A stretch of 64,000 nucleotides of DNA from Epithemia pelagica (Eukaryota; Protista; Bacillariophyta). A program made the position numbers and the translations under genes. The stretch covers positions 1,116,001 through 1,180,000 of the forward strand of contig OX337237.1 in assembly GCA_946965045.2 (NCBI GenBank), read 5' to 3'. The notes under the pieces were generated by a model, which saw nothing but the letters and a program-made list of their open reading frames with translations, was not told the origin of the DNA and searched no databases. Shown here piece by piece: positions 4,590 to 18,734 of the stretch. Every line of letters starts with the position of its first letter. Position 1 is the stretch's first letter.

Positions 4590-7500
4590 TTAACCTCCTT
4601 GATCATTCTCACTCTCTGTATCACTATCGTCCAACAGGATAATCACCTCCTTCTTTGTAATTCTAGTACTGGATCCTGGTCCTTTGTCTCCGGAACAAGG
4701 GCCGGGGCTCAACTTGGCATCCTTGCCTTTTTCCATTTTAACTTCCTTCTTAACCTCGGATATCGGATACGGTTTCTCTGGGGTGTGATGCACCTTTTGA
4801 GGAGAGGAGGTGCTTTCGACTGTTGTCGATTCAGCCCTGCAATCTTGCGACTCGTCATCACTGTCACAAAGGTCAATGACCTCTTTCTCCCTTGTCCAAG
4901 ATCGTTCCTCTGGGCGAGCACTATCACTCTCTGGTGGGCATTTTGAGCAGACGTTGTCATGATCTCCACCTGTCGTATTGTCTGCCTTTGGAGTCAAGGA
5001 CGGCTTATCATCCCTTTTCGCGGTTTTATCTTCGTCCGAATTGTCCTCTGTTTTTTCATCTTCATGCCCATCAATGTCTATATTAGGCTCTCCATTTGGT
5101 GAATCGGCATTTTCAGAATCCGCTGTGGCCCTCTCCTCTGACCTGTCATTTTTATGTCCGTCAAACTCTTCGTTTGAATCAGCTTTTCGGGAATCACCAA
5201 CGGCCGCCTCTGTTCTGTCAATTTGATGCTCGTCGACCTCGAACCTGTTGCGCGGATCGGTGTTTTCAGAATCCTCAGTGGCCTCCTTTTGCGTACTGTC
5301 ATCTTGATCCCCGTCCAGCGCTTCGTTCGAATCCGTCATGGCCTCCTCCTCTCTTCTGTCATCTTGATGCTCTGGGATCTCTTCGTTGGGCGAAATGGCT
5401 TTTTCAGAAGAGGCCCTCGCCTCCTCTTCTTCTCTTCTATCATTTTGACTCTCAGTGACCTCTTCGTTGGGTGTATTGGCTTTTCCAGAAGCTGTCATGG
5501 CCTCCACTTCCTCTCTTCTGTTATCTTGTTTATTCTCGTTGAACGCGTCATTGGGTGAGTTTTCAGAATCCGGCGTAATTTCCTCTGTTTTGTCATGATG
5601 CTCGTCGAGGATCTCTTCGTTTGGTGAACCTGGTTTTTCAGAGTCCTCTGTTATTTCCTCCAATTTGTCATCATGCTCGTGGACAACCTCGTCGTTGGGG
5701 GAATCGGCTTTATCAGAATCCGCTGTCATTTCCTCATCATGCTCGGCGAGGACCTCTTCGTTGGGTGAACCGGGTTTTTTAGAATCCGTTGTGATTTCCG
5801 TTTTGTCATCATTCTCGTGGACAACCTCTTCGTTGGGGGAATCAGCTTTATCAGAATCCGCTGTCATTTCCTCATCATGCTCGGCGAGGAGGACCTCTTC
5901 GTTGGGAGAGCCAGGTTTTTCAGAATTCGTTGTGATTTCCTCCAATTTGTCATCATGCTCGTGGACAACCTCTTCGTTGGGGGAGCCGGCTTTATCAGAA
6001 TCCGCTGTCATTTCCTCATCATGCTCGGCGAGGACCTCTTCGTTGGGTGAACCGGGTTTTTTAGAATCCGTTGTGATTTCCGTTTTGTCATCATTCTCGT
6101 GGACAACCTCTTCGTTGGGGAAATCGGCTTTATCAGAATCCGCTGTCATTTCCTCATCATGCTCGGCGAGGAGGACCTCTTCGTTGGGAGAGCCAGGTTT
6201 TTCAGAATTCGTTGTGATTTCCTCCAATTTGTCATCATGCTCGTGGACAACCTCTTCGTTGGGGGAATCGGCTTTATCAGAATCCGCTGTCATTTCCTCA
6301 TCATGCTCGGCGAGGAGGACCTCTTCGTTGGGAGAGCCAGGTTTTTCAGAATTCGTTGTGATTTCCTCCAATTTGTCATCATGCTCGTGGACAACCTCTT
6401 CGTTGGGGGAATCGGCTTTATCAGAATCCGCTGTCATTTCCTCATCATGCTCGGCGAGGAGGACCTCTTCGTTGGGAGAGCCAGGTTTTTCAGAATCCGT
6501 TGTGATTTCCTCCAATTTGTCATCATGCTCGTGGACAACCTCTTCGTTGGGGGAGCCGGCTTTATCAGAATCCGCTGTCATTTCCTCATCATGCTCGGCG
6601 AGGAGGACCTCTTCGTTGGGTGAACCGGGTTTTTTAGAATCCGTTGTGATTTCCGTTTTGTCATCATTCTCGTGGACAACCTCTTCGTTGGGGGAATCGG
6701 CTTTATCAGAATCCGCTGTCCCAGTTTCTCTGTCCAACCCATCCTCTCTGCGGGTCTCTTGGTTAGAAATGCTGCTGTCATTGTTTATCTCGTCACTACC
6801 TCCATTGTCTCCAGTATCTAGACCATGGTTAGAGTCCTTGGTTCTCTCGAGTTCGAGTTCCCTCTTGACCTTTAATATCGGGTTTGGGCTATCCAGGTTG
6901 TCCCTCTGTTGCTGTAAATCGGATTCCCTTCCTCCTGCAGTGTTATGGCAAATTTCGTCCGCGGACTCGTCATCACTATCGCAAAGGTCTATAACCTCCT
7001 TGCTACTTTGTGTGTACGGTTCATGTGGAAGTTCGCCTTCCTCAACATCGCTGTCAGGAGACTCATGACATCTATCCTCTCGCCCATCACCAGTAGTCTT
7101 ATCATCTTTTTCGGCGACATCCATACCATCATTGTTTCTTTTCAAGGAATCGTTTTCATCTCTGGATCCTTTCTGAGGTGAGGCACAAGAGGTCGCTGCT
7201 CGCTTGTTAGTGTTGTCTTTATTCTGTGAGCTGCTATGGAGTGTAATCGCGTTGGATGGTTTTCTTGAACCCCAGGATGCCTCCATTGGCTTCGCCGAGG
7301 CGTTGCGAGTCGTGCTACCCCACGTGGACTTCGCTGTCACGGTGTCCTTTTGTAACGCAACGGAGAACTCATTTCTGGAGGTCTCAGTGCGGACAGTCGA
7401 GTCACCATACTTGCTGCTGTTGGAGCCTGAACACTCGGTAGCATTGTCGATAGCTGAATTCTGTCTTGAATCTGAACTTGAAAGAACTGGATTCCACGTA

Positions 7501-10500
7501 ACATTGTAACCTCTTGAACCCCATGTTGCAGGTCTATCCTTCCTTTTGAGGACCGAAGAAGGTCTCGATCCCCAGCTTGATGAAACCCGGTTGTTGGTCA
7601 CAGGTTCATCACGAGGGGATCCGGCAGTAGGCGCGTCTCCAGGAGACGCTTGCGTCCAAGCAATCCTAGAACTCGTTGATGGGTTACCTGAATCCTTGTG
7701 CTGTATGTCGTGTCTGGAAAAGATCGTGGTACTTTCACCGCCGGGGGGTGGTTTATCCTTCCTCTTTACAGTCGAAGGATTTGATCCCCAAATGTTTCGG
7801 GTTGATCCTAATACGGTAGTAGCACTGGCAACTGTCGAGCCCCAAACAGAGGTGACGGATCGTTCGGGAGGACCACCTTCACTGGACAACCCATCGTCCT
7901 TTCCTTGGTCTTCTCTCGAGGGGGAGGATGGGGTAGAAGGAGCAGACTTTTGATTTGCGCCCCAAGTTGAATTAGCTGCTGGAAGTATACCACCGCAAGA
8001 GGGTTTATCCTTCTTTTGACGTTTAGCATCACTTGTGGCTGTTTCTTTGTTGGATCCCCACGAGCAAGAGGGGATGGATCGCTTGGCCCCCTCACCAGAT
8101 GAGCCATCCTGAGTTCCTGGGCCGTCTCCCGTAGCCGTGGAAGCATCAGCACTAGAAACAGACTGGTCGTTTTCACCCAAATTGCGATCAGTCACCGGAC
8201 ATGTAGCAGGTGCATCCGTGTTCTTCTTCAAAGAAGGTTTTGATCCCGGGTTGGCCACTGGGCGAATGGCCACAGAAGCAGAAGGTCTGGATCCCCAGCT
8301 AGCTGTAACTGGACGACTGGCCACGGATTTAGCCCACGCAGACGAGGCACGGGTTTCTCCACTTGATGTATCTTTGTTTGTGGCTCCCCAAGGTTCCTTG
8401 TTTGTTGATCCCCAAGTCGACGTTGACGAAGGACGGGTTTCTCCATGTGGTGCATCCTTGTTTGGAGATCCCCACGTCGAAGTTGACGAGGGACGGGTTT
8501 CTCCACTTGTTGTAACCTTGTTTCTGGATCCCCAAGTCGACGTTGATGAGGGACGGCTTTGTCCACGTGATGTATCCTTGTTTGTGGCTCCCCAAGCCGA
8601 CGTTGACGAGAGACGGCTTTGTCCACGTGATGTATCCTTGTTTGTGGCTCCCCAAGTCGAACTTGACGAGGGACGGCTTTCTCCACGTGCTGTATCCTGG
8701 TTTGTGGCTCCCCAAGTCGACGTTGACGAGGGACGGCTTTCTCCACGTGAAGTATCCTTGTTTGTGGCTCCCCAAGTCGACGTTGACGAGGGACGGCTTT
8801 CTCCACGTGCTGTATCTTGGTTTGCAGCTCCCCAAGTCGACGTTGACGAGGGACGGGCTTCTCCACGTGCTGTATCCTGGTTTGCAGCTCCCCGCGTCGA
8901 AGTTGACGAGGGACGGGCTTCTCCACGTGCTGTATCCTGGTTTACAGCTCCCCGCGTCGAAGTTGACGAGGGACGGGCTTCTCCATGTGGTGCATCCTTG
9001 TTTGTGGCTCCCCAAGTCGAAGTTGACGAGGGACGGCTTTCGCCAGGTGCTGTATCCTTGTTTGTGACTCCCCAAGTCGAAGTTGACGAGGGACGGCTTT
9101 CGCCAGGTGCTGTATCCTTGTTTGTGGCTCCCCAAGTCGACGTTGACGAGGGACGGCTTTCTCCACGTGAAGTATCCTTGTTTGTGGCTCCCCAAGTCGA
9201 AGTTGACGAGGGACGGCTTTCTCCACGTGCTGTATCCTTGTTTGTGGCTCCCCAAGTCGACGTTGACGAGGGACGGGCTTCTCCATGTGGTGCATCCTTG
9301 TTTGTAGCTCCCCAAGTCGAAGTTGACGAGGGACGGCTTTCCCCAGGTGCTGTATCCTTGTTTGTGGCTCCCCACGTCGACGTTGACGAGGGACGGCTTT
9401 CTCCACGTGCTGTATCCTTATTTGTGGCTCCCCAAGTCGACGTTGACGAGGGACGGCTTTCTCCACTTGCTGTATTCTTGTTTCTGGATCCCCAAGTCGA
9501 CGTTGACGAGGGACGGCTTTCTCCACGTGCTGTATCCTTGTTTGTGGCTCCCCAAGTCGACGTTGACGTGGGACGGGTTCCTCCACTTGATGAAGCCTTG
9601 TTTATGGGAGCCGGAGCTGGTTTCGCATTCCAGCCACTGACCGACAAAGTGGACGTTTGTTTGGCTCCCCAAGTCGAGGTGGCCGCGGAGGAACGTCCAT
9701 TTCCATTCATGGGTTGTGCTTCCCACGAGGAGGATGCAGCGTGCTTGGCAGGACCACTGCCTGGAATATTGGATCCCCATGACGACGAAGCCGTGCCACC
9801 CGTACTGTTTCTCTCGTATCCAGTACCAGCAGAATGTCGAACGCCTTCTTCGTGCAAGGTCGAAATAAGACTACTTGGTTGGGAACCCAAGGAAAGAGAT
9901 CTTTGTTTGCGTGGAATGCTGGGTTTGAATGATTTTTCTAACCGATCCACTTCATCGTGGGGTCGTTTTCTCGTGTTCGACGACGATTCCTGAGATGGCG
10001 AACGATATTGGGAACGTGTTCTCATCCCGTGTCGACTTTCTTGCGAGGGGGAACGCCGTCGACCGTGGTTTCCTCGCGAGGGCTCGTGGTACTTGTCCTG
10101 CGTACTGTATCGACTATCTTGAGAGGGAGAGCGATTTCGATTGTTGTGCTGTTTCTCATGTGTACTGTATCGACTGTCTTGGGAGGGAGAGCGATGTCGA
10201 CCATAGTGTCCTCCTCTCCAGCCTTCTTGATTCTTCTCGTATGTGCTGTATCGACTTTCTTGGGAGGGAGAACGATGTCGTCCAGAATATCCTCTGGAGT
10301 GATCTTGGTTTTCATGCCTACCGTATTGTCGGTTTTCTTGGGAGGGAGAGCGATATCGACCGTAGCGTTCTTTCCACAGTTCCTTCTCGTGACGATCATG
10401 GTTCTGTTCATGCCGCCTGGTACTTGTAGGACTGGTGGCATTTCGGTCGAGCTCTGGAGTGTTGCGGAGAGAAGCTTCCACGGGTTCGGTATCCTCGGTC

Positions 10501-10991
10501 AAGTCAATCACCTCGGTCTCTGGTGGTGGCGCGGCTACTGGTTTTTTTCGGGGGACACCCTTTTTCGGTGTAAAGTCCTTTAATTGTTCCGTCGCGTTCA
10601 AACGCGCTGCTTTTTCAAAGACACCCAAGTTAACACGAATGGGAGCCGTGGTTACAATACCCCGGCGAATCAAGGTCTGATCGATGAGAGACATCATTCG
10701 CCCAAAATTGGTATGACTGTCTCGTCGAACCTGCGCTGGTTGGTCACAATCCAACACGAGACGAGCCTCTCGCAAAAAGACATTGAAAAAGTGCTCGTGC
10801 CATTTTCCATCGGCAATGGGAGGATCCAAGGGTGAAGATCGGGGACTGGTGGATAAGATCTCTTGGAGGTCAGCTTCCGAGAGTTTGAGAGATTGGGAAA
10901 ACTTTCGCTTTGCGAGGCGCTCAAACAAATTGGTATCATCCTCACTACTAGTATTACCACCTCCTTGTTGGGCACTGGAAGAATCCGACAT
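4590..10991 (-). CDS. 2,133-aa largely disordered protein with RSPSQ repeats, a WG-repeat array, an acidic array and SIM-like motifs
   Basis: Single stop-free ORF. A possible acceptor (TACTGAC branch, TAG at 11040-11042) is in frame 48 nt upstream of the ATG, so an upstream exon may exist. No catalytic domain recognised. Confidence 0.8.
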   Translation of the reverse strand: MSDSSSAQQGGGNTSSEDDTNLFERLAKRKFSQSLKLSEADLQEILSTSPRSSPLDPPIADGKWHEHFFNVFLREARLVLDCDQPAQVRRDSHTNFGRMMSLIDQTLIRRGIVTTAPIRVNLGVFEKAARLNATEQLKDFTPKKGVPRKKPVAAPPPETEVIDLTEDTEPVEASLRNTPELDRNATSPTSTRRHEQNHDRHEKELWKERYGRYRSPSQENRQYGRHENQDHSRGYSGRHRSPSQESRYSTYEKNQEGWRGGHYGRHRSPSQDSRYSTHEKQHNNRNRSPSQDSRYSTQDKYHEPSRGNHGRRRSPSQESRHGMRTRSQYRSPSQESSSNTRKRPHDEVDRLEKSFKPSIPRKQRSLSLGSQPSSLISTLHEEGVRHSAGTGYERNSTGGTASSSWGSNIPGSGPAKHAASSSWEAQPMNGNGRSSAATSTWGAKQTSTLSVSGWNAKPAPAPINKASSSGGTRPTSTSTWGATNKDTARGESRPSSTSTWGSRNKNTASGESRPSSTSTWGATNKDTARGESRPSSTSTWGATNKDTAPGESRPSSTSTWGATNKDAPHGEARPSSTSTWGATNKDTARGESRPSSTSTWGATNKDTSRGESRPSSTSTWGATNKDTAPGESRPSSTSTWGVTNKDTAPGESRPSSTSTWGATNKDAPHGEARPSSTSTRGAVNQDTARGEARPSSTSTRGAANQDTARGEARPSSTSTWGAANQDTARGESRPSSTSTWGATNKDTSRGESRPSSTSTWGATNQDTARGESRPSSSSTWGATNKDTSRGQSRLSSTSAWGATNKDTSRGQSRPSSTSTWGSRNKVTTSGETRPSSTSTWGSPNKDAPHGETRPSSTSTWGSTNKEPWGATNKDTSSGETRASSAWAKSVASRPVTASWGSRPSASVAIRPVANPGSKPSLKKNTDAPATCPVTDRNLGENDQSVSSADASTATGDGPGTQDGSSGEGAKRSIPSCSWGSNKETATSDAKRQKKDKPSCGGILPAANSTWGANQKSAPSTPSSPSREDQGKDDGLSSEGGPPERSVTSVWGSTVASATTVLGSTRNIWGSNPSTVKRKDKPPPGGESTTIFSRHDIQHKDSGNPSTSSRIAWTQASPGDAPTAGSPRDEPVTNNRVSSSWGSRPSSVLKRKDRPATWGSRGYNVTWNPVLSSSDSRQNSAIDNATECSGSNSSKYGDSTVRTETSRNEFSVALQKDTVTAKSTWGSTTRNASAKPMEASWGSRKPSNAITLHSSSQNKDNTNKRAATSCASPQKGSRDENDSLKRNNDGMDVAEKDDKTTGDGREDRCHESPDSDVEEGELPHEPYTQSSKEVIDLCDSDDESADEICHNTAGGRESDLQQQRDNLDSPNPILKVKRELELERTKDSNHGLDTGDNGGSDEINNDSSISNQETRREDGLDRETGTADSDKADSPNEEVVHENDDKTEITTDSKKPGSPNEEVLLAEHDEEMTADSDKAGSPNEEVVHEHDDKLEEITTDSEKPGSPNEEVLLAEHDEEMTADSDKADSPNEEVVHEHDDKLEEITTNSEKPGSPNEEVLLAEHDEEMTADSDKADSPNEEVVHEHDDKLEEITTNSEKPGSPNEEVLLAEHDEEMTADSDKADFPNEEVVHENDDKTEITTDSKKPGSPNEEVLAEHDEEMTADSDKAGSPNEEVVHEHDDKLEEITTNSEKPGSPNEEVLLAEHDEEMTADSDKADSPNEEVVHENDDKTEITTDSKKPGSPNEEVLAEHDEEMTADSDKADSPNDEVVHEHDDKLEEITEDSEKPGSPNEEILDEHHDKTEEITPDSENSPNDAFNENKQDNRREEVEAMTASGKANTPNEEVTESQNDRREEEEARASSEKAISPNEEIPEHQDDRREEEAMTDSNEALDGDQDDSTQKEATEDSENTDPRNRFEVDEHQIDRTEAAVGDSRKADSNEEFDGHKNDRSEERATADSENADSPNGEPNIDIDGHEDEKTEDNSDEDKTAKRDDKPSLTPKADNTTGGDHDNVCSKCPPESDSARPEERSWTREKEVIDLCDSDDESQDCRAESTTVESTSSPQKVHHTPEKPYPISEVKKEVKMEKGKDAKLSPGPCSGDKGPGSSTRITKKEVIILLDDSDTESENDQGG
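5576..6720 (-). repeat. Coding tandem array, about 8 units of 138-144 bp (46-48 aa, acidic)
   Basis: Unit SDKADSPNEEVVHE(N/H)DDK(T/LE)EITT(D/N)S(K/E)KPGSPNEEV(L)LAEHDEEMTAD, itself made of two related half-units. Confidence 0.95.
8376..9575 (-). repeat. Coding tandem array, 20 units of 60 bp (RPSSTSTWGATNKDTARGES)
   Basis: Counted from the translation: 18 units carry WG and 2 adjacent units carry RG. Confidence 0.95.
9985..10365 (-). repeat. Six dispersed RSPSQ(E/D) peptide repeats
   Basis: YRSPSQEN, HRSPSQES, HRSPSQDS, NRSPSQDS, RRSPSQES, YRSPSQES in the translation. Confidence 0.85.
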
Positions 10992-12193
10992 GATGGCTGG
11001 TCCTCCTCCTTGTGCGAAGAAACGAACACTCGGAGGACCCTAATACGCCGACGCGAGTACAAAGTCACACGTCAGTAAAGGGATTCTGCTCGAGTCCTTT
11101 GGTAGAAAAAGCACACGATGATGAAGCAAAAGAAGAATCGAAGTGAGATCCCTGCAAACGATCCATGATAACGACAAAATCCTTGCGGCAACTATGATCT
11201 GTCTCCTCGTTCACTCAAAAACCCAAAATGTGAACAAGGCTCACTAACCAAAGAACAAAAGGATATGGTGCATTTCTCTCCATTCGATTCACTCACCAAC
11301 AAAAAAGACTTCGTACGTATATGATTCATCCAATAGTATTGCAGCGCAGGGGAAGCAGAGACCACCCAGATCTACTCCATTGGCTCGTCACTACGTACAA
11401 AACGACGCAGTGTCCAAACGATTTGGATTCTCGTTTCCAACCAAATGTCAGTCGCTCTACTGAGGGTGGACCCTTGGTCTGATGAAGTCCAAGAGTCTCA
11501 ATCTGCCAAGCTATTGTGTGCAATCTCGTTTGGAATGCGTAACGAGCAATAGATGGAAGATTGTATATGTTGTTCCAGTTTTCTCTTTGTTTTCATGGTC
11601 GTCGTGTCACGCAAACGAAAAGATCGCTCGTCCGGCACGAAGTATATCCGCGACTTGAATCCATGGTAAACACTCCAGCGGCAGAAAACGTTTACTGTAT
11701 TAGAGTATGAAACTTTTCGTTCTTCCAGCGATAGGTAGTTTTGGCACCGTGACCCGAAGACATTCCGCGCACATGTCCATTGTGTTTTTGCTTTATTGTT
11801 GCGACCATTAGACACCCAACTCCTTTGTTGTGTGTCTCCAGTCTCCCAGAGAACAGAATAACTCAACCCCTCCCCCTTTATTGATTGGATTATTCTACTG
11901 CGTTGGCTGTCTTCCGTTGCTGCTGCAGCTGTTGTTGGTTTTGAAGGACAAGGAGGCGTTCCACCAATAAGTTGAGACTACAAAGACGGAGTGACAGGTT
12001 GTTGCGGAAACCGTTTCTGGTGCAGATTGAGGGGTGTCTATCCGCCAAAAGCCATCACCGTGTTCCTAGTCATCACGGTGCTCCCCTTGGTTGCTCTATT
12101 TCCTCAAGATTTCTGCGCGCTTCATCCGTTCCAAAGTCTCTCTCTCCTTCGCTTTGGCATTTCATTCACGTTTGCAAGTAAAGTATAGGAACC

Positions 12194-14148: not shown

Positions 14149-17100
14149 TCATCGTCCTTCAACTAGGTCAAAAATTCGCACTTGTTGATTCCGGAACCCA
14201 GCGGCAACCGAAGCTTTGTCATCCGACAATGCAATGGATACGACCCTGGATGTGGTTCCGGTAGATGTGGCCGTGGTTTCGACGGGTACCCAGTTCATGC
14301 CATCAAAATCAAAGACATAAAAGCTGCCGAGCGCGGTTCCAATGGCGAGACGACCTCCCTTGCCGCTAAGGGTAGTTCCAATACGCTCCCCCGTCGCTCC
14401 CACAATGTCGTTTCCAATCTGTCCAATTTCATTGCTTCCTGCGGCATGACCATAAACGCGTACAATACCTTGACTCACGTTGTATCCTGGACCTCCTACA
14501 GCAAACTTGAACGTACCATCAGGTTCATCCTCAATAATGACGGTAGTTGTTCCAAACAACTCCGTATCGAGGCCGTCCGAAGCAGCACGGAGATCCCAAG
14601 AATTAGAATCCCAAACGTAGTATTCCATCCGCCCACCATTGCCATTGACACCAGGAGATCCTACTACCATTTCTTCTCCATTGGCACTCAGATCAAGACC
14701 TTCGCCCATGAAGCTCAAGTGTGTTCCAAACATACGTTCCGTGACTTCTTGCCAGTCAGAGTCAATGTAATCATACGTGGATACTCCTCCAGTATCCTTT
14801 AGTGTCTCGTTCACACTTGTGTCGGGTGCTCCGATGACAACGCGTCGGCGAGTCGAGGCAACGGCCACGGACTTGCCAAATTCGCCTGCTGCTTCAACGA
14901 CAGCTTCTTCTGTGCGGAAAACACTCCCAATCTGGTTCCATCCTCCCAACCCGTCAGACTCATAGTAGTATGCAGTTCCAAAAGAGACTGAAAGCGTTCC
15001 AAGGGAAGTAATCCCTCGAGTTTGTGGTGCTCCAACCAGCAAAGCAATGGTATCATTTTCTGCGCGTACAGCCATGTCGATAGCAGCGCCATACGATTCT
15101 GATTCATCGGCGCTGTCCGATAACAAACCTTCAACGGTAACATCCAGTGCGTTTGCCGAGCGCTCGTAAGGTTGTGCGGCTCCCAGCCCTGACAATCTCG
15201 GTAGTCCAGCGACAATGGTATCTCTCACCCATGAAATGGCTGCTCCATGCCTTGTGGTGGTTGGAGAACTAAATGTCAAAGGACCAGAACTGGCTGATCG
15301 CCATTCGCGCGTTATTCCGGAGGTCGGAGATTGTGTTGGAGCGGGTACGGGTGATGGAGTGGGAAGAGGCTGGGAGGTTCGACGGTCGGATTCTTCTTCG
15401 TAGACACTAACCAAATCTTCGGATGCATAGCCTACCAACACAGTGTAGACAGAATCAGAAGAGACGTCTACGGCGGTGATGACGGCTGTTGTTGTGTCGT
15501 TGGAAACCTCAAAGCGTTGAAACGATTGGTCCCCAATAATGTCGTATCGAATGATCTTCCCTGAGGCCGTCGCAACTACAAGCTCAGGTCCGTTCGGTCC
15601 AGCTCCTCCTCCAAGAGTCTTTGGCGTCCCTACCCGTTCACCGGGGCCTCCATCAATCTGCCTCAACTGAGTCCACGTGTTGTCGCCCTCCTGTCGTTCG
15701 AACACAAGAACAAGCCCATTTCCGTCACTTGCCGAAGGTGCACCAACCGCCACAAAATCAGAAGAAAGAAACACGACATCGGCACCCAAGTCTACTGCAG
15801 ATGCTAATGTTGTTGAATGAACAACAGACCAGTCATTGTCAATCCATTCAAAGATCCGAAAGCTGCTTGTCCCAGGCTCACCCGCCACAATGGTATTGCC
15901 ATCTCGGCTCATGTCCACAGCACTACCAAAAAGGGCGTTCGCCTGCGTCCCCACCAACTCTGTGGACGATAATATTGTCCAATTCGAGTCCAATAGTCTT
16001 CGGCTATCCGCGACATCAAAATCAAAAGTATAAACTCTGCCGTTGTTATTGGAGTACGCAGGTGCACCAATGACGATGCGATAATTGTCACTCAAACCAA
16101 CTGAGGATCCAAACTTTTCTCCAACGCTGTCTCCGACGATTTCACTTCCTTCCATTTCCCATATAGAAGTTTCGGTATTGTAGACGTAAAAGTATGCTGC
16201 ACCAGTACTGTCTCCTGATGTATTGGCACCGGGAGCTCCAATGAGGAGAAAAGGACCACCCTGTGAGCTTGCCGAACTGAATACAATATCTGCACCAAAT
16301 TCACCCGCTGATGGAGGAGCATCTATGGTCTGACTCTCTTCGTAGGTTACCATTTCTCCGCTTCTCCTTCTCAGTGCTACTGCTCCCATGTCGCCCTCTG
16401 TTGGCATTCCAATGGCAATCCAGCTACCAGCCGTCGCAACACTAGAACCATGTGCTGACATTACCGGCCCTGGAACGACTTGTCGAAGTATCATCGCAAT
16501 CGTTGATAGAACCTGAAAAAGTGAAAAATTGAGTTAGTTTCCTCGCACAGGTAGTTCAAAGAGTAGAATATGAAGGAACTTACCTGCAAAGTTGGAGCAA
16601 GAGTTGGTGCAGGGGTCGGGGAAGGCCCCGGATTATCATCATCGTCATCAGCAAGCAACCATACAATAACAACCACAAGGATTGCGATGAGTAGAATGGC
16701 AATGAATGCCGCAAGGAGTACCAACGCACAAAGAAGACAGCGTCGACGTTCCTTGGCATCCTCGTCTTCGATATTTTGTATCCTTGCCTGTTCCTGAGCG
16801 GTCACACTCTTCATGCCTTGGGCACCGTTGCTATCATCATTTGAATCAACTATAACTACGCCTCGGGTTTGTCTTTGCTGCTCATTTGCTTCATAAGTTT
16901 CTGTCGCTTGATATTCCCCCCTCGTTTCATCATACTCCGTTTGATGAGCCTCTGTTTCATCGTGAAATACTTCGATTTGATCTTCTTCATCCCCGTACGT
17001 AGGTGCATCGATTTCATCTTGTCCAGTTCGGTAAGCTTCATCATCTTCGTACATCCCTGGCGTACCACGAACTCTATAGTCATCGAGATAACTCTCGTCG

Positions 17101-18734
17101 GGTTCCTCGACCTCGCCATCATGAGCCTGGTCATTCAGGACCTCTTCTTGAGGATGATCTTGATCTCCATCTTCTTCATCTCTGAACTCCTCTTGCTGGT
17201 CACCCTCCTCATCTTCCTTATCCGGTAATTCGCTTTGGTCTTCAGAATTTCCACCTTCTTCATCTGGTAGTTCTTGTTGATCTAACTCTGCATCTTGCTG
17301 GTCGGATGCCGAACCAGGACCTTCTCCGTGCTCAGGCTCTGACTCTGACACACCAGGTTCTCCCTGTTCGGACTGTTCATTTCCTGGCTGTGCGCTACTA
17401 TCATCCACCGGATTGTCATCAGATCCGTAGCTTATACTTTCAGGCAAAGTGCGGTTCGGCCGTTGGCTGTTATTCCCCATCAGAGGAGTATCATCGTCTT
17501 CATTGACAAAAACTCCTTCAACGTCGTAGCCTGTGTCATGTACCCAGTCTGTATCGTCACGGCTCTCCACATCTTCTTCACCAACATGCTCCCTTGGTTT
17601 GTTTTCCCGTTGCCGCTCGAGCTCATCTCCCTCGTCGCTGTCATCGCCGAGTATGTCGAATACATCTCCACCTTTTCCTCCGCCTACATTTTGCTGAGCT
17701 TCGCTCTCCTCGTCCTTTCCTGCTTCTCCATCTTGGGAAGTTTCTGCACTCTTTCCTTCACTTTCTCCTTCTTGTTCTTCCACTGAATGCTGTCCTTCCA
17801 CAGCTGATTGTTCTTCAGCTTCTTGCTCTTCAACGGAAGCTTGTCCTTCTACAGCTGATTGCTCTTCAGCAGTTTCTTGGGTCTCGCCGTCTACTGCTTC
17901 ACCTTCTGTATTCTCCTGACCCTCACCCGCGTCCTCAGCCCCCTCCTCCACAACTTCGACGACCTCTACCACTTCAGTGCTATTCTCATCACCATCTACA
18001 GCCGCGGGGTCCTCCTCCACTGAAGTTCCCTCGACATCGGGGGGCTCGGATTCGGCATCCTCAGCCGTTTGTTGTTGTTGTTCCTCGGCGCGTTCGGCTT
18101 CAATAATTCTGGCTTCAGCCAAAACTGCCGCCTTTAAGTGCTCTTCAATATCAGCCTCTTCCATCTTGCCAACAACTTCTTCTTCGGATTGACCAGCGCG
18201 GAGCATTTTCATATACTTCTTGGCAATGAATGCTTCGTGCTCCAGTAATTCAATGGTTTCCTCTTCTTCCTCCTCTTCCTGTTCCTCGACCTCCACCACC
18301 TCTACCACTTCCTCATCTTCCACGACCTCAATCTCCTCTATTTCCTCCACTTCTTCCTCGACAACCTCAACCTCTTCAACTTCTTCCACCTCTTCGACTT
18401 CTTCGACTACCTCTTCGACCTCGACCTCCACCTCGACAACTTCTTCTTCTTCCTTTTTCTCTGGTGCTGGTGGTGTTGGTTCACTCGGTGGTTTGAAACC
18501 TTGTTGCGGAGGGACTGGGTGTGGAAAGTTTGACTTGGGAATGGTTGGCTGTGGAACATCAATTTCTATATCCTCCGCAAACACAGCCGCTCGTACATGC
18601 TCCCCAAGAGATCCCGCCATTCGACTTTCCACTTCCTCCTTGGAAAGACCATTCTTGAGCATTTTCTTGAATCGGTTCGCAATGACCTTTTCATACTCTG
18701 TCATTTCGGGCAAATCATCTTCCTCGCCTTCCAT
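14149..18734 (-). CDS. Type II membrane protein, about 1,504 aa: cytosolic acidic region with two CCDC53-like repeats, TM, PT stalk, two FG-GAP propellers; 2 exons (18734-16584, 16512-14149)
   Basis: Track ORFs 16491..18734 and 14149..16494 join through a 71-nt phase-0 intron (CAG|GTAAGT...ACTAAC...TTTTTCAG|GTT), giving PTLQ|VLSTIAMILR. TM RRRCLLCALVLLAAFIAILLIAILVVVIVWLLA. Blades include FGADIV..LLIGAP, FGSSVGLSDNYRIVIGAP, FGSAVDMSRDGNTIVAG, FGKSVAVASTRRRVVIGAP. Confidence 0.85.

Follow-up and report, generated by a model that had tools for sequence, protein, structure and literature searches.

Which protein acts as the effector of small RNAs in diatoms? These algae possess Argonaute, Dicer and RNA-dependent RNA polymerase, and DNA methylation at their transposons is linked to small RNAs, with no effector known (PMC4247016). 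A locus in Epithemia pelagica poses the question in concrete form. The stretch analyzed here, referred to as the window, comprises 64,000 nucleotides of contig OX337237.1 (assembly GCA_946965045.2, positions 1,116,001 to 1,180,000, forward strand), and one long gene within it encodes a protein rich in tryptophan–glycine (WG) motifs, the motif class through which Argonaute-binding platforms of plants, animals and fungi make contact with their partner. We asked whether this protein may be such a partner. The WG region is a strong candidate Argonaute hook, and we put its predicted binding to Argonaute at slightly short of an even chance. On sequence grounds, the gene is credible as the first diatom candidate for a partner of Argonaute; the literature searched contained no account of a GW/WG partner of Argonaute from this group.

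The WG platform

The initial annotation of the locus had described about 30 WG motifs in Ser/Thr-rich disorder, comprising 18 STWG or SAWG units in an array and about 12 dispersed motifs, and had held that the latter are not a by-product of repeat expansion. Counting bears out each of these points. Between residues 395 and 1248, 30 of the 35 Trp are followed by Gly; within window positions 7240–9760 there are exactly 34 Trp and 29 WG, the thirtieth motif lying about 20 nucleotides beyond, at 9779. Tandem Repeats Finder (TRF) places a 60-bp array at 8395–9607 (20.2 copies, 90% matches), which translates into twenty 20-residue units around a near-invariant RPSSTSTWG core. WG is present in 18 of the 20 units (17 STWG and one SAWG), while the other two read RG. 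Outside the array, where the frequency of Gly is 0.092, this residue nonetheless follows 12 of the 17 Trp (binomial p = 1.4e-9); the dispersed motifs are no by-product of the array. Shuffling the residues of the whole platform 10,000 times yielded a mean of 3.4 WG and a maximum of 11, as against the 30 observed.

Order-promoting residues are scarce in the region (V, I, L, M, F, Y and C together make up about 6%), and of the 10 residues around each WG, a mean of 7.8 are G, S, T, N, A or D. In the dispersed segment, three basic patches of the K-R-K-D-[KR]-P type adjoin WG motifs. Units at the edges of the array share the form WGS[RNT] with the dispersed motifs, whereas the amplified inner units carry WGATNKD; this distribution suggests that the array grew from a WG motif that was already present.

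Scoring of GW/WG domains, which had been proposed beforehand as a check on the Argonaute idea, places the protein in the highest published class. We re-implemented the score from the matrix and rules of Karlowski 2010 (PMC2910046), with WG and GW as seeds and a dec of 8.6 half-bits; the published filters are dos > 6.99 half-bits and ics < 2.14. Judged by dos alone, to which all figures here refer, residues 395–906 form a single domain with 23 WG and 246.6 half-bits, against the threshold of 6.99. Seven smaller domains score 7.7–21.8 half-bits, of which six carry the platform on as far as residue 1248, while one (8.4 half-bits, residues 254–261) falls in an arginine/serine (RS)-like region. Among the other open reading frames (ORFs) of at least 150 residues in the window, the best domain reaches 30.5 half-bits. 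In Karlowski 2010 the “strong” class (>150) was confined to NRPE1, SPT5L (586) and GTB1 (PMC2910046).

Spacing is a second feature. Argonaute-binding sites of TNRC6 need at least two Trp, 10 or more residues apart (PMC9262622), and the Trp of the diatom protein are 20 residues apart in the array and 16–79 elsewhere, with one gap of 8, in keeping with the TNRC6 rule. Multiple WG motifs clustered in disorder, the hallmark by which members of this class are recognized, amount here to 30 in 854 residues.

A relative in Epithemia clementina

If the WG motifs matter, they might be expected to persist in relatives. When the N-terminal 190 residues were searched with full HMMER against 1.84 billion representative proteins, one true match emerged, the hypothetical protein ACA910_013421 of the raphid diatom Epithemia clementina (E = 7.7e-7); a second match (E = 7e-4) proved on inspection to be an unrelated repetitive protein. 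BLASTP aligns the pair from Met1, with 31% identity over 134 residues (E = 2e-15). ACA910_013421 is a single-exon ORF of 891 residues with the same order of parts: an N-terminal domain (N-domain) containing G-x-W-H-E-H, two motifs resembling SUMO-interacting motifs (SIMs; IILLDDSDSEEE and IVYEIDDSDSDED), an R/Y/S-rich stretch and a WG-rich tail. The tail holds 13 Trp and eight WG, and includes four 81-residue units that each carry RGWGSA and SSTWG[D]. At the DNA level this repeat (243 bp, four copies, 98% identity) is unrelated to the 60-bp unit of E. pelagica. Since the architecture and [ST]-W-G are shared while the repeats are not, the repeats were amplified independently while WG was kept.

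The proposal that orthologs should retain WG thus holds in part: eight of 13 Trp are WG in an unrelated repeat, in the single ortholog found. Such turnover has a precedent in the platform of NRPE1, a disordered run of repeats whose evolution is faster than that of the remaining protein (PMC6188566). Further searches were blank. A search with the N-terminal region of the ortholog found no relative beyond ACA910_013421, neither the alignment nor the N-domain sequence on its own picked up a relative in scans of Joint Genome Institute (JGI) metagenomes, and ESM Atlas feature searches with the N-domain and with the WG region gave no usable match. To judge from the pair of sequences, the two proteins represent a lineage-specific diatom family of scaffolds, combining the N-domain, SIMs and a WG platform. 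The E. clementina gene sits among three SWEET (MtN3_slv) transporter genes (7749–8964, 15486–16705 and 18104–18706 of its contig piece), and has no synteny with the Mo25/FG-GAP neighborhood of the E. pelagica locus.

Two haplotypes of the gene

The second haplotype in the E. pelagica assembly, about 99% identical over 20 kb (window 43822–64000), offers a comparison on a shorter timescale. Its allele, on contig ctg1215l, is an intact ORF of 1917 residues. Both haplotypes have a 20-unit WG array (395 residues), a WG region of 934 residues and 30 WG, and differ in the order and sequence of the array units. In window 7929–8012, where seven substitutions fall within 84 nucleotides, a TGG-to-TTG change removes one WG and a TGC-to-TGG change creates another 11 codons upstream, leaving the total at 30. 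We regard the equal count as only suggestive of WG retention.

Elsewhere in the gene, lengths vary. The acidic array measures 387 residues in the haplotype of the window and 197 in the other (allele residues 1399–1596), and the RS-like region 148 and 124. Copy-number stability thus contrasts strikingly within one gene, the WG array being equal and the acidic array two-fold apart. Synonymous divergence in coding sequence is 0.02–0.03 between the haplotypes, and the intergenic promoter region (window 10992–12193) is 93% identical, with indels.

A scaffold of several modules

The initial annotation had seen no recognizable parent domain. No family rises above noise in Pfam searches with the whole protein (E up to 1), with its N-terminus and C-terminal half (E up to 10) or with the ortholog, so this stands as far as named families go; it does not extend to the protein as a whole, in which a conserved N-terminal helical domain and four SIM-like motifs accompany the platform (Table 1). 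With these parts, the protein would be a multi-module scaffold of nuclear type rather than a bare WG tract.

Table 1 Features of the gene, in order from its N-terminus (all positions are those of the window)
Feature	Position	Strand	Basis
Whole gene, one unbroken 2133-residue ORF	4590..10991	minus	ORF list; intact allele; single-exon ortholog
N-terminal helical domain, residues 18–140, invariant G-x-W-H-E-H	10572..10940	minus	Ortholog alignment, AlphaFold2, haplotype comparison
SIM-like motif 1, TEVIDLTEDTE, VIDLT core and acidic tail	10485..10517	minus	Pattern scan, translation check
Basic RS-like region holding six RSPSQ units, net charge +15	9942..10424	minus	Sequence
WG platform, residues 395–1248, S/T/G/A/N-rich disorder, 35 W, 30 WG, 1 GW	7248..9809	minus	Translation, motif counts
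20-unit array of 20-residue repeats, core RPSSTSTWG	8391..9575	minus	TRF and unit table
Dispersed WG segment, C-terminal side of array, 13 W, 10 WG, mostly [ST]-W-G-S-[RN]	7248..8390	minus	Translation
SIM-like motif 2, KEVIDLCDSDDES	6963..7001	minus	Pattern scan, translation check
psi-K-x-E site VKRE, past SIM-like motif 2	6858-6869	minus	Pattern scan
Acidic repeat array, 144/282-bp period, 16 SPN[ED]E[VI] units	5556..6719	minus	TRF, sequence
SIM-like motif 3, identical to motif 2	4848..4886	minus	Pattern scan, translation check
Two psi-K-x-E sites, past SIM-like motif 3	4731-4754	minus	Pattern scan
SIM-like motif 4, KEVIILLDDSDTESE, IILL core and DDSDTESE, near C-terminus	4608..4652	minus	Pattern scan

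AlphaFold2, run on the two-sequence alignment of the N-domain, models five helices (predicted local distance difference test score 74, predicted template-modeling score 0.65). Foldseek found no match for this model in the PDB at E up to 0.001, and an ESM Atlas shape search returned template-modeling scores only up to 0.47; profile and sequence searches of the PDB likewise found no match to the N-domain or to the protein. In an exhaustive VIA search the highest Z was 7.5, and the SAP domains of rice SIZ1 and human PIAS1 reached 6.6–6.7. For helical bundles, whose arrangement is a common one, Z below about 13 is uninformative in this search, and the SAP likeness is therefore kept only as a lead, if a curious one beside a PIAS-type SIM. 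Neither SAP nor any other known fold is claimed for the N-domain at Z of 7.5 or less.

SIMs were sought as a [VIL]x[VIL][VIL] or [VIL][VIL]x[VIL] core with an acidic or Ser flank. Four strong matches emerged (three VIDL and one VIIL/IILL), each with eight or nine D, E, S or T in its flank, in a protein with only about 9% V, I and L overall. VIDLT followed by Ser, Asp and Glu is the classical form of the PIAS-type phospho-SIM. The IILLDDSD core of motif 4 recurs in the E. clementina ortholog, and five of the 16 acidic units hold a weak SIM-like VLLA core. Acceptor-type sites lie beside the SIM-like motifs: three of the psi-K-x-E type and one weaker P-K-x-D match. Part of this is a duplicated module, at 6858–7001 and 4731–4886, in which an identical 13-residue SIM-like motif is followed some 30–40 residues on by psi-K-x-E; the two copies flank the acidic array, itself 387–388 residues long.

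The protein is a block polyampholyte, with a net charge of +52 over residues 1–1248 and −183 over the 885 residues from 1249 to 2133, and these charge blocks could permit self-association or autoinhibition. Its N-terminus is hydrophilic, with no hydrophobic N-terminal segment, signal peptide or bipartite plastid presequence. Given the basic K-R-K patches, the RS-like region and this absence of a signal peptide, the scaffold is probably nuclear.

The locus and its annotation

The locus is a real, conserved single-exon diatom gene, with a largely disordered scaffold as its predicted product. The reading frame opens at the first ATG, 17 codons past an in-frame stop, and its surroundings are gene-dense, with Mo25, RCC1, DEAD-box and FG-GAP genes in the window; Rfam and tRNA scans of the 64 kb found no match.

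Why, then, had the protein escaped notice? The ENA assembly ERZ21939226 carries the locus, 100% identical to window 2194–23597. Its gene calls include an antisense ORF of 618 residues within the WG array (window 8137–9993, plus strand; 5944–7800 of the ERZ21939226 locus), and of the true ORF only an 844-residue C-terminal piece was called. Because the automatic calls took the antisense frame of the repeat, the WG domain in its sense frame is absent from protein databases. The exact 2133-residue protein has no entry in the protein collection searched, and a word-based search among proteins 0.55–1.75 times the query length found no homolog of either the N-terminal region or the dispersed WG region, a blank that we attribute to the mis-called locus in the source assembly. 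The locus thereby exposes an annotation gap, in which the antisense frame of a repeat was called in place of a WG domain.

How the protein may act

We infer that the WG platform would serve as a multivalent Argonaute hook, its Trp side chains, in their surroundings of small polar residues, each fitting into one of the Trp-binding pockets in the PIWI domain of a diatom Argonaute. At spacings of 16–79 residues, two motifs could span a pair of pockets, and one molecule could therefore gather several Argonautes loaded with small RNAs. The SIMs may tether the assembly to SUMO-modified proteins, presumably of chromatin, and the N-domain may anchor or oligomerize it. In such an arrangement the scaffold would take part, as effector or adaptor, in silencing that does not depend on slicing and most likely happens in the nucleus.

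A small-RNA silencing scaffold was also the proposal of the initial annotation, and the “strong” score, the Trp spacing, the dispersed motifs and the WG kept in the ortholog are consistent with it. What has to be given up is the picture of an isolated WG tract, as the N-domain and SIMs are present too. These additional parts invite a bolder suggestion: that a single polypeptide couples Argonaute, guided by small RNAs and acting independently of slicing, through its WG motifs to SUMO-marked chromatin, through its modules of phospho-SIMs and SUMO sites. We consider this full coupling unlikely, though worth stating. If true, stramenopiles would gain their first described Argonaute effector, and a single protein would be the counterpart of the axes of SUMO-dependent nuclear silencing known from flies and worms. 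Should the link hold, the Argonaute-hook principle would reach the stramenopiles, and SUMO would be indicated as a bridge to chromatin. The gene is a concrete candidate to take forward, having a defined WG platform, a conserved N-domain and SIMs, and an ortholog in the culturable E. clementina.

Evidence to the contrary and alternative explanations

A number of observations weigh against an Argonaute hook. The WG/GW score is reported to yield compositional false positives (PMC2910046), and the composition of the diatom region departs from the plant reference (T 0.16 versus 0.04, G 0.10 versus 0.21; r = 0.67). Two array units have lost their motif by a TGG-to-CGG change, which replaces Trp by Arg, and the WG of the sole ortholog found lie mostly in a very young array, with copies 98% identical. 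Divergence between the haplotypes was estimated by the Nei-Gojobori method. The dispersed WG region is 94.4% identical in amino acid sequence, with a nonsynonymous-to-synonymous ratio (omega) of 0.85, near neutral; at that rate about one Trp change is expected and one is seen, so that there is no within-species signal of constraint specific to Trp. Omega for the C-terminus is 0.83, and the N-domain has no nonsynonymous and three synonymous differences. Taken together, these values (zero versus three differences, against omega of 0.83–0.85) indicate that the N-domain is constrained and the tail close to neutral overall.

The alternative that survives best is an Argonaute-independent scaffold of condensates or SUMO bodies, which we regard as a minority possibility of some weight. 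Here Trp and Arg—one and two, respectively, per 20 residues of the array—would act as aromatic and cation-pi stickers, the basic N-terminal half and acidic C-terminal half would coacervate, and SIMs together with SUMO sites would supply SUMO–SIM multivalency, forming a nuclear body with no role in small-RNA biology. The charge blocks of +52 and −183, the four SIM-like motifs with their three psi-K-x-E-type sites and one weaker P-K-x-D match, and the RS-like region would all suit such a body. Generic stickers, however, leave unexplained why Gly follows 30 of the 35 Trp, with p of about 1e-9 outside the array, and why [ST]-W-G survives in the E. clementina ortholog. Condensate and Argonaute roles are, moreover, not mutually exclusive.

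Alternatively, the platform might serve another protein with Trp pockets, for instance CCR4-NOT (through CNOT9/CAF40), PAN3 or an unnamed diatom partner. CCR4-NOT (CNOT9/CAF40) and PAN3 bind W motifs of the GW182 silencing domain. The motif grammar, Trp in S/T/G-rich disorder, is the same, and CCR4-NOT is also recruited by W-containing regions of GW182. Nevertheless, we think this improbable: W motifs known to bind deadenylases come in small numbers, in proteins that bind Argonaute as well, whereas 30 copies of WG are what Argonaute platforms typically show, SPT5L with its more than 40 motifs (PMC2910046) among them.

Nor does mere ancestry account well for the pattern. The dispersed motifs could be decayed units of an older repeat, with WG devoid of function and the work of the protein done by the N-domain and SIMs; omega of 0.85 in the dispersed region, the tolerated Trp-to-Arg units and the youth of both arrays (copy identity 90% and 98%) would all follow. 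Neutral decay would not, however, leave the W-G pair as the sole remnant, nor would it place [ST]-W-G in unrelated repeat units of two diatom lineages or hold both haplotypes to the same WG count when one motif has moved. We hold this explanation to be quite improbable.

Finally, diatoms use Trp-rich disordered proteins both in biosilica and in the plastid, as is generally known, but a secreted, biosilica-associated protein (like the W-type cingulins) or a pyrenoid linker with Trp stickers is very improbable and disfavored here, as the N-terminus is hydrophilic, is conserved in the ortholog from Met1 onward and shows neither a signal peptide nor a bipartite presequence, the motif is WG rather than of the W-S/T-P type, and the SIMs, K-R-K patches and RS-like repeats indicate the nucleus; both roles were rejected for want of a targeting peptide.

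Comparison with known systems

The predicted Argonaute hook has close parallels in plants. The C-terminal domain of NRPE1, SPT5L/KTF1 and SPT6L/GTB1 likewise contain long, repetitive, disordered tracts with dozens of motifs, in which repeat units turn over between lineages and nothing persists but WG and a composition rich in S/G/N/A and poor in hydrophobic residues. They share the “strong” score class with the diatom protein, for which a nuclear-type context is also likely. The plant tracts, however, extend from the body of a polymerase or elongation factor, while that of the diatom is joined to a novel helical domain and SIMs. The diatom tract is also far richer in Thr and poorer in Gly, and its Argonaute binding is a prediction.

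GW182/TNRC6 proteins resemble the diatom protein in being multivalent, with W motifs that lie in disorder and are spaced by 10 residues or more (PMC9262622). The diatom protein could in principle gather several Argonautes and drive condensation. The two differ in their domains: the diatom protein has no Ago_hook, UBA, RRM or PABP-binding match in Pfam (E up to 1 for the whole, 10 for the parts). Membership of the GW182/TNRC6 family is ruled out, as Pfam and PDB searches revealed no sequence homology.

Lineage-specific solutions are not without precedent. Tas3 of S. pombe and Wag1/CnjB of Tetrahymena are GW/WG proteins, each specific to its lineage, that link a nuclear Argonaute to machinery of chromatin or genome rearrangement (PMC12477606). 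The combination of a helical interaction domain with a hook is a further likeness. Tas3 differs in having only few GW motifs, and neither it nor Wag1/CnjB is homologous to the diatom protein. We know of no SIM modules in Tas3 or Wag1/CnjB.

The SIM-like motifs, for their part, recall those of PIAS proteins, with V-I-D-L-T or I-I-L-L cores followed by runs of Asp, Ser and Glu, although the diatom protein is without the SP-RING and PINIT domains of that family. SUMO ties small-RNA guides to chromatin silencing in worms and flies, as exemplified by SUMOylation of HDAC1 in C. elegans (PMC8131101) and by Su(var)2-10 in Drosophila (bioRxiv 533091). In the worm and fly systems, one protein provides the link to SUMO and another the contact with Argonaute, whereas in the diatom both classes of motif would be on one polypeptide.

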